Source of the DNA: Thalia democratica
Taxonomy: Eukaryota
Direction: 5' to 3'
Assembly (NCBI GenBank): GCA_965202585.1
Contig: OZ241827.1
Location: 52,266,001 to 52,330,000, forward strand
DNA length: 64,000 nucleotides
Position 1 is the first letter of the stretch; the number at the start of each line of letters is the position of its first letter. The translations under genes were made by a program, and so were the position numbers. The notes beneath the pieces were generated by a model that searched no databases, was not told the DNA's origin, and was given only the letters and a program-made list of their open reading frames with translations. Shown in pieces: positions 3,818 to 12,047 of this stretch.

Positions 3818-6800
3818 TTAGAGAATAGTGGGAAAACCATGTTCTGACATTCCTTCACAAAGTGATACAAGTTTTGAACAAATGAAGCTTATCTTATCAT
3901 CATCAAGGTCTGCAATTCCAAATTTGCTGATCATGGAGTCTCTTACTACTTGTTTGTATGCCACCAGCTGACCTTCCATAATTTTTAAATTTGATGCAAG
4001 CTGTGCAAGGCGTTCATCCTGCTCTTTCTTCTTTTGAGCTTTCTTAGTGCGGTATCTCTGTGCTGCTTTTCGGTCAGACTCCTTTTTCTTCTCATACTTT
4101 TCTTCCTGAGAAAGCTTTGATCTGCCAACCTTTCTTTTAGAAATTTTACTAACATGCAGGGCGGATGTACTTTTTAAAATGCACTTGTTAGGAACTAGGC
4201 GGGGCTTAATATTGATTGTATCATATGAGAATTCTTTAGTGGAGTTATAGAAATCCTTATCAAACGTATCATAAAGTAATTTACCTTGGAAAAGACTGGT
4301 GCCATCTATCATGGAAGTATTAGAGAGACCCTTAACCTGAAAATTTGGCTGGGGTGAATCAAGCTTAGGAGGACTTGCAAACCCGCTGTCACTAGAAAGT
4401 GGTGAAACGCTTCTGTTAAGTTTAAAAGCAGATGGTAAAAGTATATCATTATTATTTGGGTTAACGTTCAAGGGGGAGAGAAAGAGGTCAGAATTGTCGG
4501 AATCTGCGTTAAGGTTTAAGTTATTGCTATCATACTCTGCGGTATTATTAAGTCGGTGCAAACTGTGATTGAGCACGTTTGGATCATTCAAGCCAGGTTT
4601 GAAGAGGTCATCATATATTAGTGGTTCAGCATCTAGTTGTTGTGGAATTGGAGTTGTTACTCTAGGGTGCTGGACAAATTGATCTGAAAAATTATTTTAT
4701 ATTTAACAGGGATGTTAGCAACAAAGTGTTAATAAATCTTAGTAACTTTTTTAAAGACAAAAAGGCTTTTTTTAATAAATTTAGTATGGCTTAAAAAAAC
4801 TAGTTTCTTTAATCACAAGTTTTACCATATATAACATTTTAACTACAACAAACTAAAAATAATTAATATGTAATTACTCCTATGTCAGCATTTATAATGT
4901 CATGTTTTATTTGATTTTAATAAAATTTTTGCCCAGTAACTAAGCATTTGAAAGATTTATGATAAGGCCATAGGGTTAGGACAATTTTTACAAAAAATAA
5001 CTTTGACACTTTTTGAAAGTTTAAGGCATTTATTATATGATAAATTCAATAAAACATAAAAATCTATTTTACTTAAGCTATCAAAGTAGAACAGTTTAAC
5101 TTTAATGGGTTCCTTATTTAAGGACCAAATGAAAACCATAAAAAATATTAACTAACAACTATCTTTTCCTACAGCAATTGTTCATAACTTTTTGAATCTT
5201 ATCTTAAATTAGTAATATAAACTTGTATTATACTAGTTTTCAGTTGAGGTTCTTTTAATTATACAAGAATTTATTTATTCTTTTGGTCACTACATATTCT
5301 TCTTCAAATGTTACGATAGGGTTTTTCTTATAATGAAATAATGTCATGTGTTTCAAAACTGGAGGTCAATTGCTTAAAATTAACAACACTAACATAATTT
5401 TACTATCAAACTTAATCTAAAAGTGTCAATAAAAAAAATTCAGGCTGTAGTTTGTACCAGAAGCTTTTTACAAAAACAACTTTATCTTAACTACTGTTTA
5501 AAGATTCTTTTATAGTTTATACTTTTTAAGAACCATATTTATTTTGGTATGAAAATGCCCTTATCCGCCCCATTCTATAAATTACAGCTAAAAATAAAAA
5601 GACATTTAAGCATTTTCAAATTCACTAAAACTAAAAATCAATATTCAAACATTTAATATTTCTCAGAATTTACAACAGTTTTTAACAATGAACCAAGCAG
5701 TACATAACAAAATGGTCAAGAAATATTTTTTAGCACAGTCTTGTTCAAAATTTTAGATATAAATGTTTCAATTTATCTATAAACTACCGTGTTGACTAAC
5801 CATTTCCATTAATGTATTGCAGTGTAGGCGTACTAGATGCAGGAAATGTGACTTGGCTGCTGATCAAACCCTTGGAGCTGTTAGGTGAAGGACAAGTAGA
5901 AAAGCCAGCAGAGCTTTCACTTGAAAATGTTGCACCATTAGTGGAAGGGTCTTGCATAGCACAACCATCTCTGCTTTCATTCAGCAGAGCTGTTTTTTAT
6001 ATTTATAAATTAACTTTAAAAAAGATTCCCACTTCTAATTTATAAACGAAATCAAGCCTAGTTAAGGGCATATGGGAGGTGAATCACTTTTTTCACAAAT
6101 TGATCTTAATAGAGCTACTAGATGCAATTTGGAAATTTTAGAAATTCAAATTATTTTTTTTAATATAGCCGATTAAAGTGAGAGCCAAAAATAGGATCAT
6201 TATGAGAGGGGCAAACAAAAAGCAAATAACTAGAAGTCACAAAAAATATACCTTCTTCTACATATTTTGAGATAAATACCTCAAAATTTCAGGAAGTATT
6301 CCTTGGGATTGTTTAGAAATTTCTGTCAGAACAAAGTTTTCAAAAATTTAAAAATTTAAAGTTTAAAATTGAATCCAAAAAAACTTTTTTTTTTTTTTAA
6401 TTCCTTCAGACAGAATTTTCTAAATATTTAGGGTCGCCACATTTTTTTTCAAAAAATTTTCCAGGTTTTCAAAAGTACACATTTTAGGGTTTATTTTAGT
6501 TTAAAGTCAAGTTTAGGGTAAAAAAACTTGTTTAATTGTATAAAAAAATTAAAATGATACTGTAAAGCTACTTTAAACATGTTTTTTAGAAAAAAATTGT
6601 TAAATGATGACAAACTTTTTGATTAAATGATAGATTTTCAACATCAAAATTTTATAACTACAAATGTGAAAATTGTTAACATTCCAGGTTTCTCAGTGAA
6701 TTTTGTTCAAAACTCCAGGTTTGAGGTTTTATTTTTTTCTAAATTGTCAAATTCCAAGTATTTCTAGGATTCCAGGTAAAGTGGCAAACCTGAATACTGC

Positions 6801-8229
6801 AAGGAACATTTCCTGAAAGTTTGAGGTATTCACAGGGTTGCCACTTGTTTTCTCTAAATTTTTTCCAGGTTTTCCAAACTTCTTCCAGGTTTTTCCAGTA
6901 CACATTTTCAAGTCTATTCTTAGTTTTAAGTTAATTTCTATATTAGAAACTTAGTTAAATAGTATAAAAACATTGAAAAGATACTGTAAAGTTGCTTTAA
7001 ATGTGTTTATTAATAAAAAATTTTTTGATGATGGCAAAAAAATCTTATTTATGATAGATTTTTTGTGTCAAATCAAAATTTTACTTCTGAAAATGTTTAA
7101 ATTATTTTTAATTCCAGGTTTTTCCAGGTTTTTTGATCAAAATTCCAGGTTTTTCCAGGTTTCTTTCAAGATTTATCAAATTCCAGGTTTTTCCAGGTTA
7201 TTTTTGCCTTAATTGTCGAATTCCAGGTTTTTCAAGGTTTTTCCAGGTTTCCAGGTAAAGTGGCAACCCTGTATTTAACTCAAAAAATGTAGAAGATAGA
7301 TTTTTAGTTACAGAGTCTTTTTTTTTTTTTTTTTGATTTTAGTATTTGTTTCCCATAAGGAACTTATTATTGCCTTAGACTTGGACCTGCTATATCTCAA
7401 AAATTATTTTGAATTTTTAAAATCTGTATAAGCATCTTGTAGCTTATTTAAAATTCTATAAAATAAGATTAAATTGTGAAAAAAGTTTTTACCCTCTATG
7501 CCCTTAGCAGCCAAAAATATTTATCCATCAATAATAAGATGAAAAAATATAATACTATTGTATTAGAGTTAAGATTTTATTTATGGGAAGAGTGTTAACT
7601 TCTGTTATAAACTGTAGTTTACTAAATGTAAAAATGACTTACCAAAATCAAAGCAGCTTTGAGGCTTCTGAAGTTGATCAAAAATGTCCATTGGACAATC
7701 ACCCAGGGAATATAAATCAGAACATTGTAGTGAAGGATCTGTAAATATATTTACATATATAGAAGTTTGTAACAAAATTAAGTCAAAATGAATAATATTG
7801 AGATCTTGGTATTGTAAAAATTATCAATACTATCACAAAATAATATCAATACTAATACTTAGACAAATCTTTGTTATTAATGAAGACTGCTGTTAAAACT
7901 TCTAATCACAAACTGGATACTCTTAGTTTTGGTAAAAGGTATAAATAGGTGAACAAGTTATAATTTTCTACCTGAATTTATAAATTCATCTTCCAAACGG
8001 GTTGAAAAAAGTTGATCAATCTCTGATAGTGCTTGTTGTTGATAAGCATCTTGGCTGGAAACCACAGCTGGAATAATACAAAAGTTATTAGCAATTTTTC
8101 TCGCAACAACTTATTTAATATAATATTATCGTTGAGATTAAAACCTTTACTGTGTCCCGCCAGAATCATGTTGTTTGACATATTGCTCATATTGTTCATG
8201 TACATGTTCATAATTGGTGGATAAACCAT
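3818..8229 (-). CDS. ATF4: ATF4/ATF5-family bZIP transcription factor, 5 coding exons, up to 443 aa
   Basis: GT-AG exons 8229-8145, 8067-7972, 7738-7643, 5989-5801, 4683-3818 sum to 1332 nt and join in frame (all phase 1). The protein has a DSGFAS beta-TrCP-type degron and a C-terminal bZIP (KKKESDRKAAQRYRTKK...L-x6-L-x6-L) resembling ATF4 KKMEQNKTAATRYRQKK. The two-uORF leader supports the ATF4/5 assignment. The exact start AUG (seven candidates) is uncertain. Confidence 0.85.
6429..6792. mobile_element. MITE family B (TAGGGTCGCCAC...GTGGCAAACCTG), hAT-like termini
   Basis: Imperfect TIRs, internal TTCCAGGTTT repeats, flanks AATATT/AATACT. Confidence 0.65.
6833..7271. mobile_element. MITE family B (CAGGGTTGCCACT...AGTGGCAACCCTG)
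   Basis: 13-bp perfect TIR, many TTTTCCAGGTT subrepeats, flanks TATTCA/TATTTA. Degraded relatives occur at ~20380-20658 and ~58940-59260. Confidence 0.75.
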
Positions 8230-9305
8230 AGTTATAGGTTGAAAAGGAACTGTTGAAAAATAATTATGTTAAATACATTTTCAATAAGCCATTTAAATGT
8301 TATTAGAACTTTATTAACCTGGAAGAATTCATAGTGTATTTATTGATTTTGTAGTTTTCTTATTACAATCCTTTAATTATTTTATGTTTTCACTATGATT
8401 GATATATTTCCAAAAGCTTAACTGGCTAATTTATTAACTTATACAATATAAACTTAGTTTGGAGTGCTTTAAAACAAATTTAAGGGCATAGGAGGGGTTA
8501 ACACCCTTTTTTGGTTTTTGATATTATTCTATATAGTTTTTATAAAGCTACAAAATGCTTTTTGAAGATTTTAAAACTTCGATATGATTTAGGAGATATA
8601 GGCGGTCAAAGTCAGAGGCAACAATAGGATCCTTATGGGAGCCACAAACTAATGCCTCAAATAACTAGAAATCACTAAAATCTATCTCCTCCTATGTTTT
8701 TCGAAATAACACTACCTCAAGTTTTCAGGAAATGTTCCTTGATATATTAAGAAAATTCTGTCAGAGAAATTTAATAAAATTAAAAAGTATAAATTTATTA
8801 TAAAAAATAAACAGAAAAGTTTTTTTTTCAGCTTTTATATTATAATTTCTTTTCCAATTTTTTAAAAATTCTTTCCGACAGAATTTTCTAAATATATTAA
8901 GGAACATTTCCTGAAAAGTTGAGGTAGTTATCTCAAAAACATATATAGATTTTTAGTGATTTATAGTTATTTATCGTTTTAGTTTGCGCCTACCATAAGG
9001 ATTCTATTGTAGCCTCTGACTTTGACCAGCTATATCTCAAAAACTATTTTGAATCTTTTTAATATGTTAAAAGCATCTTGTAGCTTAGTAAAAACTTAAT
9101 AAAATGAGATCAAAAACCAAAAAAGGGTGGTCACCCCCCTTTGCCCTTAAACAACTTGTGTATTTCATATAAGAATGCATTTCTATAATGGTTGATAAAA
9201 AGGTGTTGTATAAATAATTTTTGCCCAATAGATTTCAATGTATAATTAGAATTAATAAGGTTAATAAATAGCTCGTGTAAAAATGTAAGAAAGAACTCAC
9301 TTCAT
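8147..9305 (-). promoter_or_regulatory. uORF2 of ATF4-like gene, spliced, 35 aa, overlapping the main AUGs out of frame
   Basis: ATG AA| (9305-9301) splices to T TCC TTT... (8249 onward), giving MNSFSTYNYGLSTNYEHVHEQYEQYVKQHDSGGTQ*, with the stop at 8149-8147. Confidence 0.75.
8483..9147. mobile_element. MITE family A
   Basis: TTAA/TA flanks, AGGGCATAGGAGGGG ... CCCCCTTTGCCCT. Lies in the intron that splits uORF2. Confidence 0.8.
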
Positions 9306-9349
9306 ATTTGCAATTTTGTTGTAGTGGTAGTCTTTCTTGAAGAAAGAAA

Positions 9350-9361
9350 TTAGCAAGCCAT
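9350..9361 (-). promoter_or_regulatory. uORF1 of ATF4-like gene (ATG GCT TGC TAA, M-A-C-stop)
   Basis: Three-codon ORF in leader exon ~9372-9301 (acceptor CACAG at 9373-74, donor GTGAGT at 9300-9295). It has the same size and position as vertebrate ATF4 uORF1. Confidence 0.8.
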
Positions 9362-9999
9362 ATTTACTGACACTGTGTAGGAAAGTAAAAAATTATACAA
9401 ATGGTTGATAAATATTTTCTTGGCAAACAACTATTTGTCTGCAGTAGAAAAAAAGGCTTCTTATATATTCATACGCTTATCGAATAACAGATACCAGGGC
9501 AAAAAAAAAAGCTATTTCAAACAAATTTAAAATAAAACAACTATCAATAATAAAATAGAAAAATTTAAATAAATCTAAAATATTTTTGATTTAAATTGAT
9601 AAAAAAACAAAAACTTTTTATAGTAGCTTAAAATTAAAATATAGTTTTACTAAGTTTTAAAAAGCCTATTATTTTATAAACTTAAATTAACATAAGAAGC
9701 GAATTTAATGATTTTTTAATAACTTTTTTACAAAAGATAACAAAGATAAGATTTTTATTTTTTTACCAAATATACAAAATAAATAAAAACTAAACTAAAA
9801 AGTCGAGTTTCCAGAATACCAAGAAAATAGTATTCTAAATTTTGAGTAAAATTTTTTTATTATATCTTAAAATAAAATACTTGAATAATTATCCGGATAC
9901 TAACATGCGTATATTTTTGTAGCTTTTTATGAAAGTTTTATTCACAAAAACTATAGCTAAATATCGTATTGTATAAATAAGTTTATCGAGCAATATATA

Positions 10000-12047
10000 T
10001 TGAACAATAAAACAACAATACTCAAAAAAAATTCGTCTAAGGTCCTAGCTGGTGTAAATATAAAGCTTCTTAGTCATCAAGTAATCAACAACAGGCTTAA
10101 ACTTAATGTAAAACACTCTTGTAAAACGGATGTAAGGAAAGACAGAAACTTGGACATAAAAATAGGTAATTCATCTATATTAAAAGTAGAAAATTATAAG
10201 TATCTCGGTGTTACAATTGATAGTAACTTCAATTGGTCTGACCATATTAAGGCAGTAAAAACTAAGTTATTGCAGACAATAGGCATTTTACACAAAACTA
10301 GGTACTTTTCAAACCAAAATTCTTTATATTATATCTTTAACTTACTTCTGATGAGTCATGTAAGATATGGTCTATTATGTTGGGGTAGGGCTAGTAAAAC
10401 TAAAGTTACTGAGATTGATAAACTTATAAATAGAGCATTAAGGTGCATTCATTTTAAAGGTTGGAATGAAAGTGTTAACAGTATAAAAATAGAAAAGAAA
10501 ATACTAAATGTTGAAAATATGTTTAAGTATAAGTTAGGAGTTTTTATGCACAAGTTTAAAAGAGATATTGCTAACCGTATTTATTTATAAAAAATTAAAA
10601 GAATATCATTTTATTTCTATCTTAAACGGGTATAAATAGGCAAGGCAACTTAATTTAGTTATAAAATAAACAATAAAAACTATGTACAATTTGTTACTTT
10701 CACGAAGAAAAGATACAAAATGGTGCGCAACGCTTGAGTTTTCTACACATTAATCTTATACGAACTTTAATATCGATAAAGGTGGAAAAGACGATATTTC
10801 TGAAAGTAGAAATTCTATCAAAATTATTTCATATCATTCCACAGCTTACGTCTTCGGCCTCGAATTCATACGTAAGCTGTTTTATATTGTTCTATAGTTA
10901 ACCTCTGCGGCCGCGCAGTCCCAAGCCAACTATTTTGTATCGTACTGCTATTCACCTCTCCGGCCTCGAAGTCCCTAGTGAAAAGTTGCAACTACTTCCA
11001 CGAAGGAAAAGTCGCTCCGATGAAGCGGCCTAGGTCCGCTCCGTAGGGTAGTTGAGGTATAATAACCGGTTTGTCGATGTGCTTCATCGTTTATATACAT
11101 TTTTACTCTTTTTTTGCAGGTGGCTTGGCATGTTGACAGTTGCAGGTGACTTGGCATGTTGACAGTTGCAGATGACTCGACATGTTTTTAATAGCCATCT
11201 AACATTCTTACCTAGCTTTGCACACAGCAATTAGTAAATACAAAATTGTATTTTTTGCCGTTGTCAATCAAGAAAAATCGAGTAGAATTAAAATATAAAT
11301 TAGAAAATTGTTGTTATTATTTATTTGAAACTCACCTATTTTCAAAATACAATTTTTTAATTAAATTTTTTTTTAAATACAATTCTATTGCATCCATCGA
11401 TATATGGACGATTGAAGTGAAATGAGTATAATTTCACATCAATGTCCAACAAAGATACTTTACCACAAGCCTTACTTTACAAGAGTAAATAAAATTCACA
11501 ATCATTCAACAAGATTTTCAGAGAAAAATTATTATATCTCTAGAGTAAATATTCTTTATGGTTTTAAAACCTTATCCTATCTTGGATGTAAAGTATGGGA
11601 GGAAATTCCAAGAAAACTAAAAGATCAGAGCTACCTTGGAGCTTTTTAGTCTGGACTAAAAGTTGTTTTACTTAAAAATTAATCAGACAGACCGCAAACT
11701 TAATTTTCTCTATTTTTTTTAACAACTATGATAAATTTCTATTATTGGTACATTTTTAATTTATTCTTTGGCTGATTAATGGTGGCTTGATTGGGTGTGA
11801 GCAGAGATGGCTAGGTTCTTGTTCTTTAAATTTGGGATTTAGTGTCACTGTCTTGTCTCCATTGACTATGTGGCTAAAAATAGATTTGCTTAGTTATTAT
11901 TTTATTTAACTAAGTTCTAATATCAATTCATGAGTTAGATGAACAGAGTTTTTTTTTACAGAGGTACAATATGTATTTAAGTATCTTTAATAATTTAAAA
12001 TTTATTTACTTGTTAGATTATTAATATTATTGTTTAGAAAAAAAAAA
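10000..12047 (+). mobile_element. Decayed 3' portion of CR1/L2-group non-LTR retrotransposon, interrupted ~10590-11450
   Basis: ORF 10000-10590 has post-RT motifs (YKYLGVTID, FNWSDHI, SHVRYGLLCWG). The C-terminus resumes at 11422-11680 (IHNHSTR, LSYLGCKVWEEIP), followed by a UTR and an A-tract at ~12037-12047. Confidence 0.75.
11114..11185. repeat. 26-bp tandem repeat, ~2.8 copies
   Basis: TTGCAGGTG(G/A)CTTGGCATGTTGACAG repeated. Confidence 0.85.

Follow-up and report, generated by a model that had tools for sequence, protein, structure and literature searches.

A putative ATF4-type leader with two upstream open reading frames on a bZIP-like gene of Thalia democratica

The window analyzed here, 64,000 nucleotides of the Thalia democratica genome (assembly GCA_965202585.1, contig OZ241827.1, positions 52,266,001 to 52,330,000), carries a minus-strand gene for a bZIP-like protein resembling the transcription factor ATF4. 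Two short upstream open reading frames (uORFs) were identified ahead of its main open reading frame (ORF), the second of which is split by an intron and overlaps the main start codon out of frame. Based on this layout, its analogy to known systems and its retention in four relatives and in a paralogue, the leader is likely to be a functional translational control leader of the ATF4/GCN4 type, belonging to this lineage's ATF4-like bZIP gene. The interpretation is supported for the architecture and for selection; stress dependence and ATF4 orthology we infer. As judged from nucleotide and amino acid comparisons, purifying selection acts more strongly on the geometry of the leader than on the protein encoded downstream.

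Leader architecture and gene model

All genic features described below lie on the minus strand, and coordinates are those of the window. uORF1 (9361-9350; ATG GCT TGC TAA, translated MAC*) stands in a strong initiation context (A at -3, G at +4). The ATG of uORF2 (uAUG2, 9305-9303) follows the uORF1 stop after a gap of exactly 44 nt; it opens the sequence ATGAA at 9305-9301 and likewise has A at -3, as does the main start, so that all three starts share an A at this position. Intron 1 (8250..9300; 1051 nt, GT..AG) interrupts codon 2 of uORF2 in phase 2, with the donor ATGAA/gtgagt at 9301/9300 and the acceptor ttcaacag/TTCC at 8250/8249. The remainder of uORF2 (8147..8249) overlaps the main ORF, whose ATG was placed at 8229-8227 by scripted rebuild, 25 nt after uAUG2. 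Spliced uORF2 encodes 35 amino acids (MNSFSTYNYGLSTNYEHVHEQYEQYVKQHDSGGTQ) and terminates at TAA 8149-8147, giving an overlap of 83 nt in the -1 frame; its stop is 2 nt ahead of the exon 2/3 junction (exon end 8145), and four exon junctions lie downstream of it. The original prediction had placed uORF1 at these coordinates, which hold on direct reading and in the scripted rebuild, and its 44-nt distance to the second AUG is exact in the sequence. The 35-residue length, the phase 2 splice and the out-of-frame overlap of the main start, also predicted, each proved correct in the rebuild.

Between uAUG2 and the uORF2 stop there are seven ATGs in the main frame, the other two frames having none there. 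These are the main start and six additional in-frame ATGs at 8211, 8205, 8199, 8190, 8181 and 8169, a run lying within 8167..8229 which is partly kept in relatives (3-7 Met).

Direct reading of the sequence together with the scripted rebuild gave a gene of six exons with a product of 443 amino acids. Exon 1 (9372-9301, donor GAA/gtgagt) is the leader exon, in which uORF1 and the spacer are followed by the opening 5 nt of uORF2. It is followed by exon 2 (8249-8145), with the donor AAG/gttttaat as set by relatives' mRNA, and the main ORF continues through exon 3 (8067-7972), exon 4 (7738-7643), exon 5 (5989-5801) and exon 6 (4683-3818, including the stop). Every intron is GT..AG and the main frame is open throughout, in a genome that is AT-rich (GC about 0.22-0.34). 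Over matched exons the product is 89% identical to the protein P0001 of the family. The end of exon 2 was fixed by the relatives' mRNAs, in which the exon 2/3 junction is ...CACAGTAAAG/CTGTGG; the donor is therefore AAG/GTTTTA at 8145/8144 and uORF2 has 35 codons. An alternative donor, CA/GTAAAG (8151/8150), which gives a uORF2 of 51 codons, was excluded because all of these mRNAs show the former junction.

ORF-based pipelines overlook the leader element because the intron splits uORF2. An annotation of this element is supplied here, together with the corrected gene model of six exons and 443 amino acids.

Conservation of the leader in relatives and in a second gene copy

The last exon was used as a protein query, which returned five relatives, and a contig look-up then yielded 2.1-kb metatranscriptome contigs of mRNA character, which represent four different relatives (L001 to L004). 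Protein identity to the window outside the overlap is 89% for L001, 68% for L002, 53% for L003 and 35% for L004/L005. The mRNAs of the relatives include exon 1, and the junction between exons 1 and 2 is the same in all four; L001 reads GCAAATATGAA/TTCCTTTTCAACC, which is the 9301/8249 junction of the original prediction. Conservation of the uORFs among relatives, on which that prediction also depended, was observed even at 35-38% protein identity, and in the paralogue as well.

uORF1 is MAC* in L001, L002, L004 and the paralogue, and MSC* in L003. The spacer between uORF1 and uAUG2 measures 44, 44, 45 and 47 nt in L001 to L004, respectively, and the distance from uAUG2 to the main AUG is exactly 25 nt in all six sequences (window, paralogue and four relatives). 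The corresponding lengths of uORF2 are 35, 35, 40 and 34 codons, out of frame with the main ORF in every one; in L003, where the usual stop has been lost, uORF2 extends to the next stop and is out of frame still. No ATG was found upstream of uORF1 in any relative contig, those of L002 and L004 extending 27 and 34 nt beyond it.

Nucleotide identity of the leader to the window is 0.98, 0.89, 0.82 and 0.79 for L001 to L004, as compared to 0.94, 0.82, 0.71 and 0.54 for the coding sequence. L001 shows only 2 differences in a 94-nt leader alignment, and the first 34 codons of its main ORF are identical. These 34 codons (8145-8229), which span the overlap, are the most conserved part of the mRNA at the nucleotide level, above the bZIP region: where residues are identical the same codon is used in 85-100% of cases, versus 57-95% elsewhere. 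Synonymous sites are conserved on either side of the uORF2 stop; beyond it their conservation extends for 17 nt and crosses the exon 2/3 junction into exon 3, and this portion is not explicable by dual coding. Within uORF2 itself, the part which does not overlap the main ORF varies in amino acids (MNSFSTYN, MNSLLTYN, MISFSIYK, MYFLPIYK) and the C-terminal residues KQHDSGGTQ are nearly invariant.

A search of the 802-Mb genome identified a second gene copy (L024, G000:C2:78320300-78330100) which lies on the same contig at a distance of about 26 Mb. Compared with the gene in the window, its leader shows 95-96% identity (leader exon 96%), its exon 2 88% and its protein about 64%. uORF1, the spacer, uAUG2 and the 35-codon uORF2 are all retained, and an intron of 2289 nt is present at the identical position (ATGAA/gt). 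The first main AUG is replaced by ACG, and the start would fall at the equivalent of Met9. The C-terminus is shorter and ends in ...CEGM*, as does that of P0003 from another species, which suggests that the paralogue is a real second gene. Two more copies are located near G000:C2:78434805 and 78517497; they contain several in-frame stops and no detectable leader, and hence look like decaying duplicates.

A scan of metagenomes with the leader motif returned 108 stretches, all of them chance matches. The contigs of two distant family members, P0006 and P0007, are genomic pieces of the last exon, with no leader on them.

Two local RNA hairpins were identified. The first (9331..9347) starts 2 nt past the uORF1 stop and is a 7-bp, A/U-rich stem-loop, UCUUUCU-UCA-AGAAAGA, with a folding free energy of -5.1 kcal/mol; in each of the six sequences it is more stable than shuffles (z -4 to -6.5). 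Its stem is invariant, variation being confined to the loop. The second (8052..8162, in which 8162-8145 pairs with 8067-8052) forms in the spliced mRNA only, since it needs intron 2 removed, and has the uORF2 stop in its loop. Its free energy is -11 to -15 kcal/mol (z -2.0 to -3.8), and the consensus fold includes it, a single G-U pair being changed to A-U. Both hairpins are conserved in every relative; they may tune scanning or termination, which is offered as a lead only.

Protein identity, proposed mechanism and alternative explanations

The core of the bZIP-like basic region, AAQRYRTKK, is encoded at 4040..4066, and KAAQRYRTKK is invariant in the family. We take a basic region of the form AA-x-RYR-x-KK to be typical of ATF4/ATF5, with RYR as its hallmark. 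In the 802-Mb genome the pattern AAxRYRxKK was found only in the ATF4-like gene and two paralogue copies. Other bZIP_2 matches in the genome were C/EBP-, PAR/NFIL3-, XBP1-, CREB- and Fos-like, with the pattern in none of the ten translated; as these belong to other classes, no better ATF4 candidate is present in the genome. A degron-like motif of the beta-TrCP type (DSGxxS), SVSPLSSDSGFASP, is encoded at 4370..4411 with Ser-Pro sites flanking it. In the five-protein alignment it takes the form SVSPLS[SN][DE]SG[FY][AS][ST]P, the core being invariant, and is a motif match only. For ATF4 the degron recognized by beta-TrCP has been described as DSGXnS with neighbouring proline-directed sites (PMC2963346). 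AlphaFold predicted a continuous helix of 63 residues across the bZIP-like region, and an Atlas feature search gave bZIP_2 clusters at 0.91, as a lead only. Based on AAxRYRxKK, the DSGxxS-like motif and the lack of any other candidate in the genome, the gene is probably an ATF4/5 orthologue.

By analogy with ATF4, uORF1 would be translated by most ribosomes, after which the 40S subunit would stay on the mRNA and resume scanning. With plentiful eIF2 ternary complex, recharging would take place within the 44-nt spacer and initiation would occur at uAUG2; ribosomes started there would terminate downstream of the main start, and little protein would be made. Since the uORF2 stop is upstream of four exon junctions, coupling to nonsense-mediated decay (NMD) is likely, and termination at this stop would probably expose the mRNA to it. 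Upon phosphorylation of eIF2-alpha, recharging would be late, uAUG2 would be bypassed, and initiation would take place at the main AUG or at one of the six further in-frame AUGs within 60 nt. The original prediction held that the integrated stress response switch is intact in this animal. Of that statement, architecture and selection are borne out by the relatives and the paralogue, and the stress-dependent part we infer.

The prediction also likened the leader to the delayed-reinitiation layout of ATF4, and the match to published descriptions is good. In ATF4, a uORF1 of three sense codons which permits reinitiation is followed by a uORF2 of 60 codons, in the -1 frame, whose last 83 nt lie within the main ORF (PMC11058473, PMC5666893, PMC5972666). 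The present leader has the uORF1 of three sense codons known from mammalian ATF4 and ATF5, and its uORF2, again in the -1 frame, likewise reaches 83 nt into the main ORF. Human ATF4 possesses three nearly consecutive in-frame AUGs, of which AUG1 is leaky, and a conserved stem-loop in the overlap (PMC11058473); several in-frame AUGs at the main start and a hairpin in the overlap are found here too, as are the bZIP-like RYR basic region and the DSG degron-like motif. The differences from mammalian ATF4 (geometry figures from PMC11058473, PMC5666893 and PMC13587735) are mainly those of size. uORF2 has 35 codons rather than 60; uAUG2 and the main AUG are 25 nt apart as opposed to about 97 nt (derived as 180 - 83); uORF1 is followed by a spacer of only 44-47 nt; and no start-stop uORF0 was seen here. 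There are seven in-frame AUGs in place of three, the uORF2 stop is contained in the hairpin, which extends across an exon junction, and the protein is too diverged for recognition by any search.

In Drosophila crc there are likewise two uORFs, of which the second runs into the main ORF in a different frame. Mutants of the uAUGs behaved as the model predicts, uORF1 being positive and uORF2 negative, and the leader has been called "conserved across phyla"; the fly overlap measures 125 nt, against 83 nt here (PMC4433282). A uORF1 of three codons which permits reinitiation, followed by an inhibitory uORF (the latter predicted here), is likewise a feature of yeast GCN4 and Neurospora cpc-1, whose output is set by the level of ternary complex and the intercistronic distance (PMC5972666). 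GCN4 differs in having four uORFs, none of which overlaps the main ORF, and far longer spacers.

The effect of the 44-nt and 25-nt distances was approached with a toy model of Poisson recharging, which gave a 1.2-8-fold switch, only with fast recharging. In this model the run of in-frame AUGs raised both output and fold induction 1.5-2 times relative to a single AUG.

Several observations weigh against the leader being a functional ATF4/GCN4-type switch on an ATF4-like gene. Both distances are much shorter than the mammalian ones, and in the toy model a usable switch requires a mean unstressed recharging distance of about 25 nt or less. RNA contigs from two marine metatranscriptomes covered exons 5-6 only (bridging 4683/5801), with none over exons 1-4; the 9301/8249 junction and the mRNA 5' end were read in relatives only. 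The whole leader fold showed no gain in stability over shuffles (z -0.11), and no compensatory substitutions were found in either hairpin among the aligned relatives. As to the protein, the basic region of bZIP proteins carries an invariant Asn (N-x7-R). In this family Asp takes its place without exception (ESDRKAAQRYR, within 4040-4100), even in the distant members P0006 and P0007, and the protein may have an altered DNA-binding specificity or may act mainly as a heterodimer partner. The Pfam models bZIP_2 and bZIP_1 matched three and two of five members, respectively, at E values of 0.003-0.09 (best 0.003 and 0.007), under the cut-off. Nothing significant was returned from the PDB by single-sequence or profile searches, the best bZIP being GCN4 at an E of about 0.8. 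A hidden Markov model search of 1.84 billion representative proteins gave seven at E <= 0.001, six of which are the family itself, and a profile word search of 5.8 billion clustered proteins recovered the five family proteins only. Comparison of the AlphaFold model with Swiss-Prot models by Foldseek was uninformative. None of these sequence and fold searches tied the protein to a named ATF4. The seventh and weakest match of the hidden Markov model search, P0008 (905 aa, E 2e-7), was rejected as a family member, as it looks like a chance match of a repetitive basic region.

An explanation of the uORFs as functionless ATGs which arose by chance in an AT-rich leader has one fact on its side, namely that about 30% of shuffles of the 92-nt leader have at least two ATGs (P about 0.3). 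Paired uAUGs in a single leader sequence are not beyond chance; the geometry retained in the relatives and the paralogue is. Positions, lengths and frames are kept in four species and the paralogue despite the protein falling to 35% identity, and the chance explanation, which we regard as extremely improbable, is already contradicted by these comparative data. It is also quite improbable that the leader is conserved for some other cause, with the uORFs as by-products; candidate causes would be an RNA structure, signals for splicing or trans-splicing, a binding site, or a uORF2 peptide with a bioactive or stalling effect. The synonymous conservation 17 nt beyond the uORF2 stop and over the exon 2/3 junction is in favour of such a cause, along with the two local hairpins that exceed shuffles in stability and the nearly invariant KQHDSGGTQ at the uORF2 C-terminus. 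The hairpins, however, are without compensatory changes, and the non-overlapping residues of uORF2 vary freely while its start, frame and overlap are always kept; even in L003, in which the usual stop is lost, uORF2 continues to the next one out of frame.

The uORFs might, on the other hand, be conserved and translated as a constitutive brake coupled to NMD, and not as a switch sensitive to eIF2-alpha. We consider this unlikely. Distances of 44 and 25 nt do yield little or no induction in the simple model unless recharging is fast, the position of the uORF2 stop ahead of four exon junctions is an arrangement expected to trigger NMD, and even in human ATF4 uORF2 is still translated under stress (PMC11058473, PMC5972666). 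A brake, however, could do without a 3-codon uORF1 and without a fixed spacer; both are nonetheless conserved, the spacer within 3 nt. Bypass and a late start are a better fit for the out-of-frame overlap and for the series of AUGs in the main frame, and all of the two-uORF leaders of ATF4 or crc tested to date are stress-inducible (PMC4433282, PMC5972666).

Should the leader indeed be a switch of the ATF4/GCN4 type, the ATF4/GCN4 logic of translational stress control would have been maintained by strong selection in a lineage of marine invertebrates that evolves fast, with the transcription factor itself diverged beyond recognition by homology search while the leader persists. That the two-uORF leader of ATF4 is shared by invertebrates and mammals has been described before (PMC4433282, PMC5666893); a literature search on ATF4, uORF and Ciona found no paper describing one in a tunicate. 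The GH6 domain of tunicate cellulose synthase, looked for as a sign of tunicate identity, gave no match, which is uninformative. The known mechanism of delayed reinitiation is unchanged by the present leader, whose architecture adds a real, though predictable, case to a type of switch already well known. Its compact geometry, its run of AUGs, its outlasting of protein similarity and the presence of a paralogue make it a useful natural variant and no surprise; the combination of 44 nt, 25 nt and seven in-frame AUGs could be used to test the effects of distance and of multiple starts on the gain from reinitiation. A more speculative proposal, which we hold to be rather doubtful, is that this lineage runs a miniaturised ATF4 switch. 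Timing would then be achieved by a "landing strip" of up to seven AUGs in the uORF2 overlap and by the two hairpins in place of a long distance between uAUG2 and the main AUG, and the leader architecture, having outlived recognizable protein homology, would be a better marker of ATF4 orthologues than protein sequence, and the best one, in fast-evolving genomes.

5' boundary, intronic repeats and upstream sequence

Immediately upstream of the leader exon, an acceptor-like polypyrimidine-AG tract (ttttactttcctacacag/, 9373..9390) ends 11 nt upstream of uORF1. It is kept in the paralogue and in L002, and the contigs of L001 and L003 start at its AG or 2 nt before it. The tract is a possible spliced-leader trans-splice acceptor, or else the 5' boundary of the leader exon. 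A putative TATA box, TATATAA (9461..9467), is located approximately 90 nt upstream of the leader exon, and no ATG occurs from there down to uORF1. A possible outron, from TATATAA at 9467 to the AG, would be about 90 nt in length and without ATG.

The original prediction described intron 1 as containing a miniature inverted-repeat transposable element (MITE). This is a fair description given a foldback, MITE-like repeat of roughly 640 bp (8494-9137; arms 8494-8680/8951-9137 and 8711-8779/8860-8928), over which word depth in DNA runs is 10^5-10^6, versus about 100 for unique sequence. Introns 4 and 1 (6164-7542 and 8331-9315) are packed with very high-copy repeats of the same word depth (10^5-10^6 in DNA runs), including foldback elements and arrays of AACCTGGAAAAACCTGGAAT-like units at about 6700-7290.

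Upstream of the gene, on the plus strand, an ORF of 196 amino acids was identified at 10000-10590. It contains a motif (...YLGVTIDSNFNWSDHI...) like the C-terminal part of the reverse transcriptase of non-long-terminal-repeat retrotransposons (long interspersed elements), and is probably a retroelement fragment.

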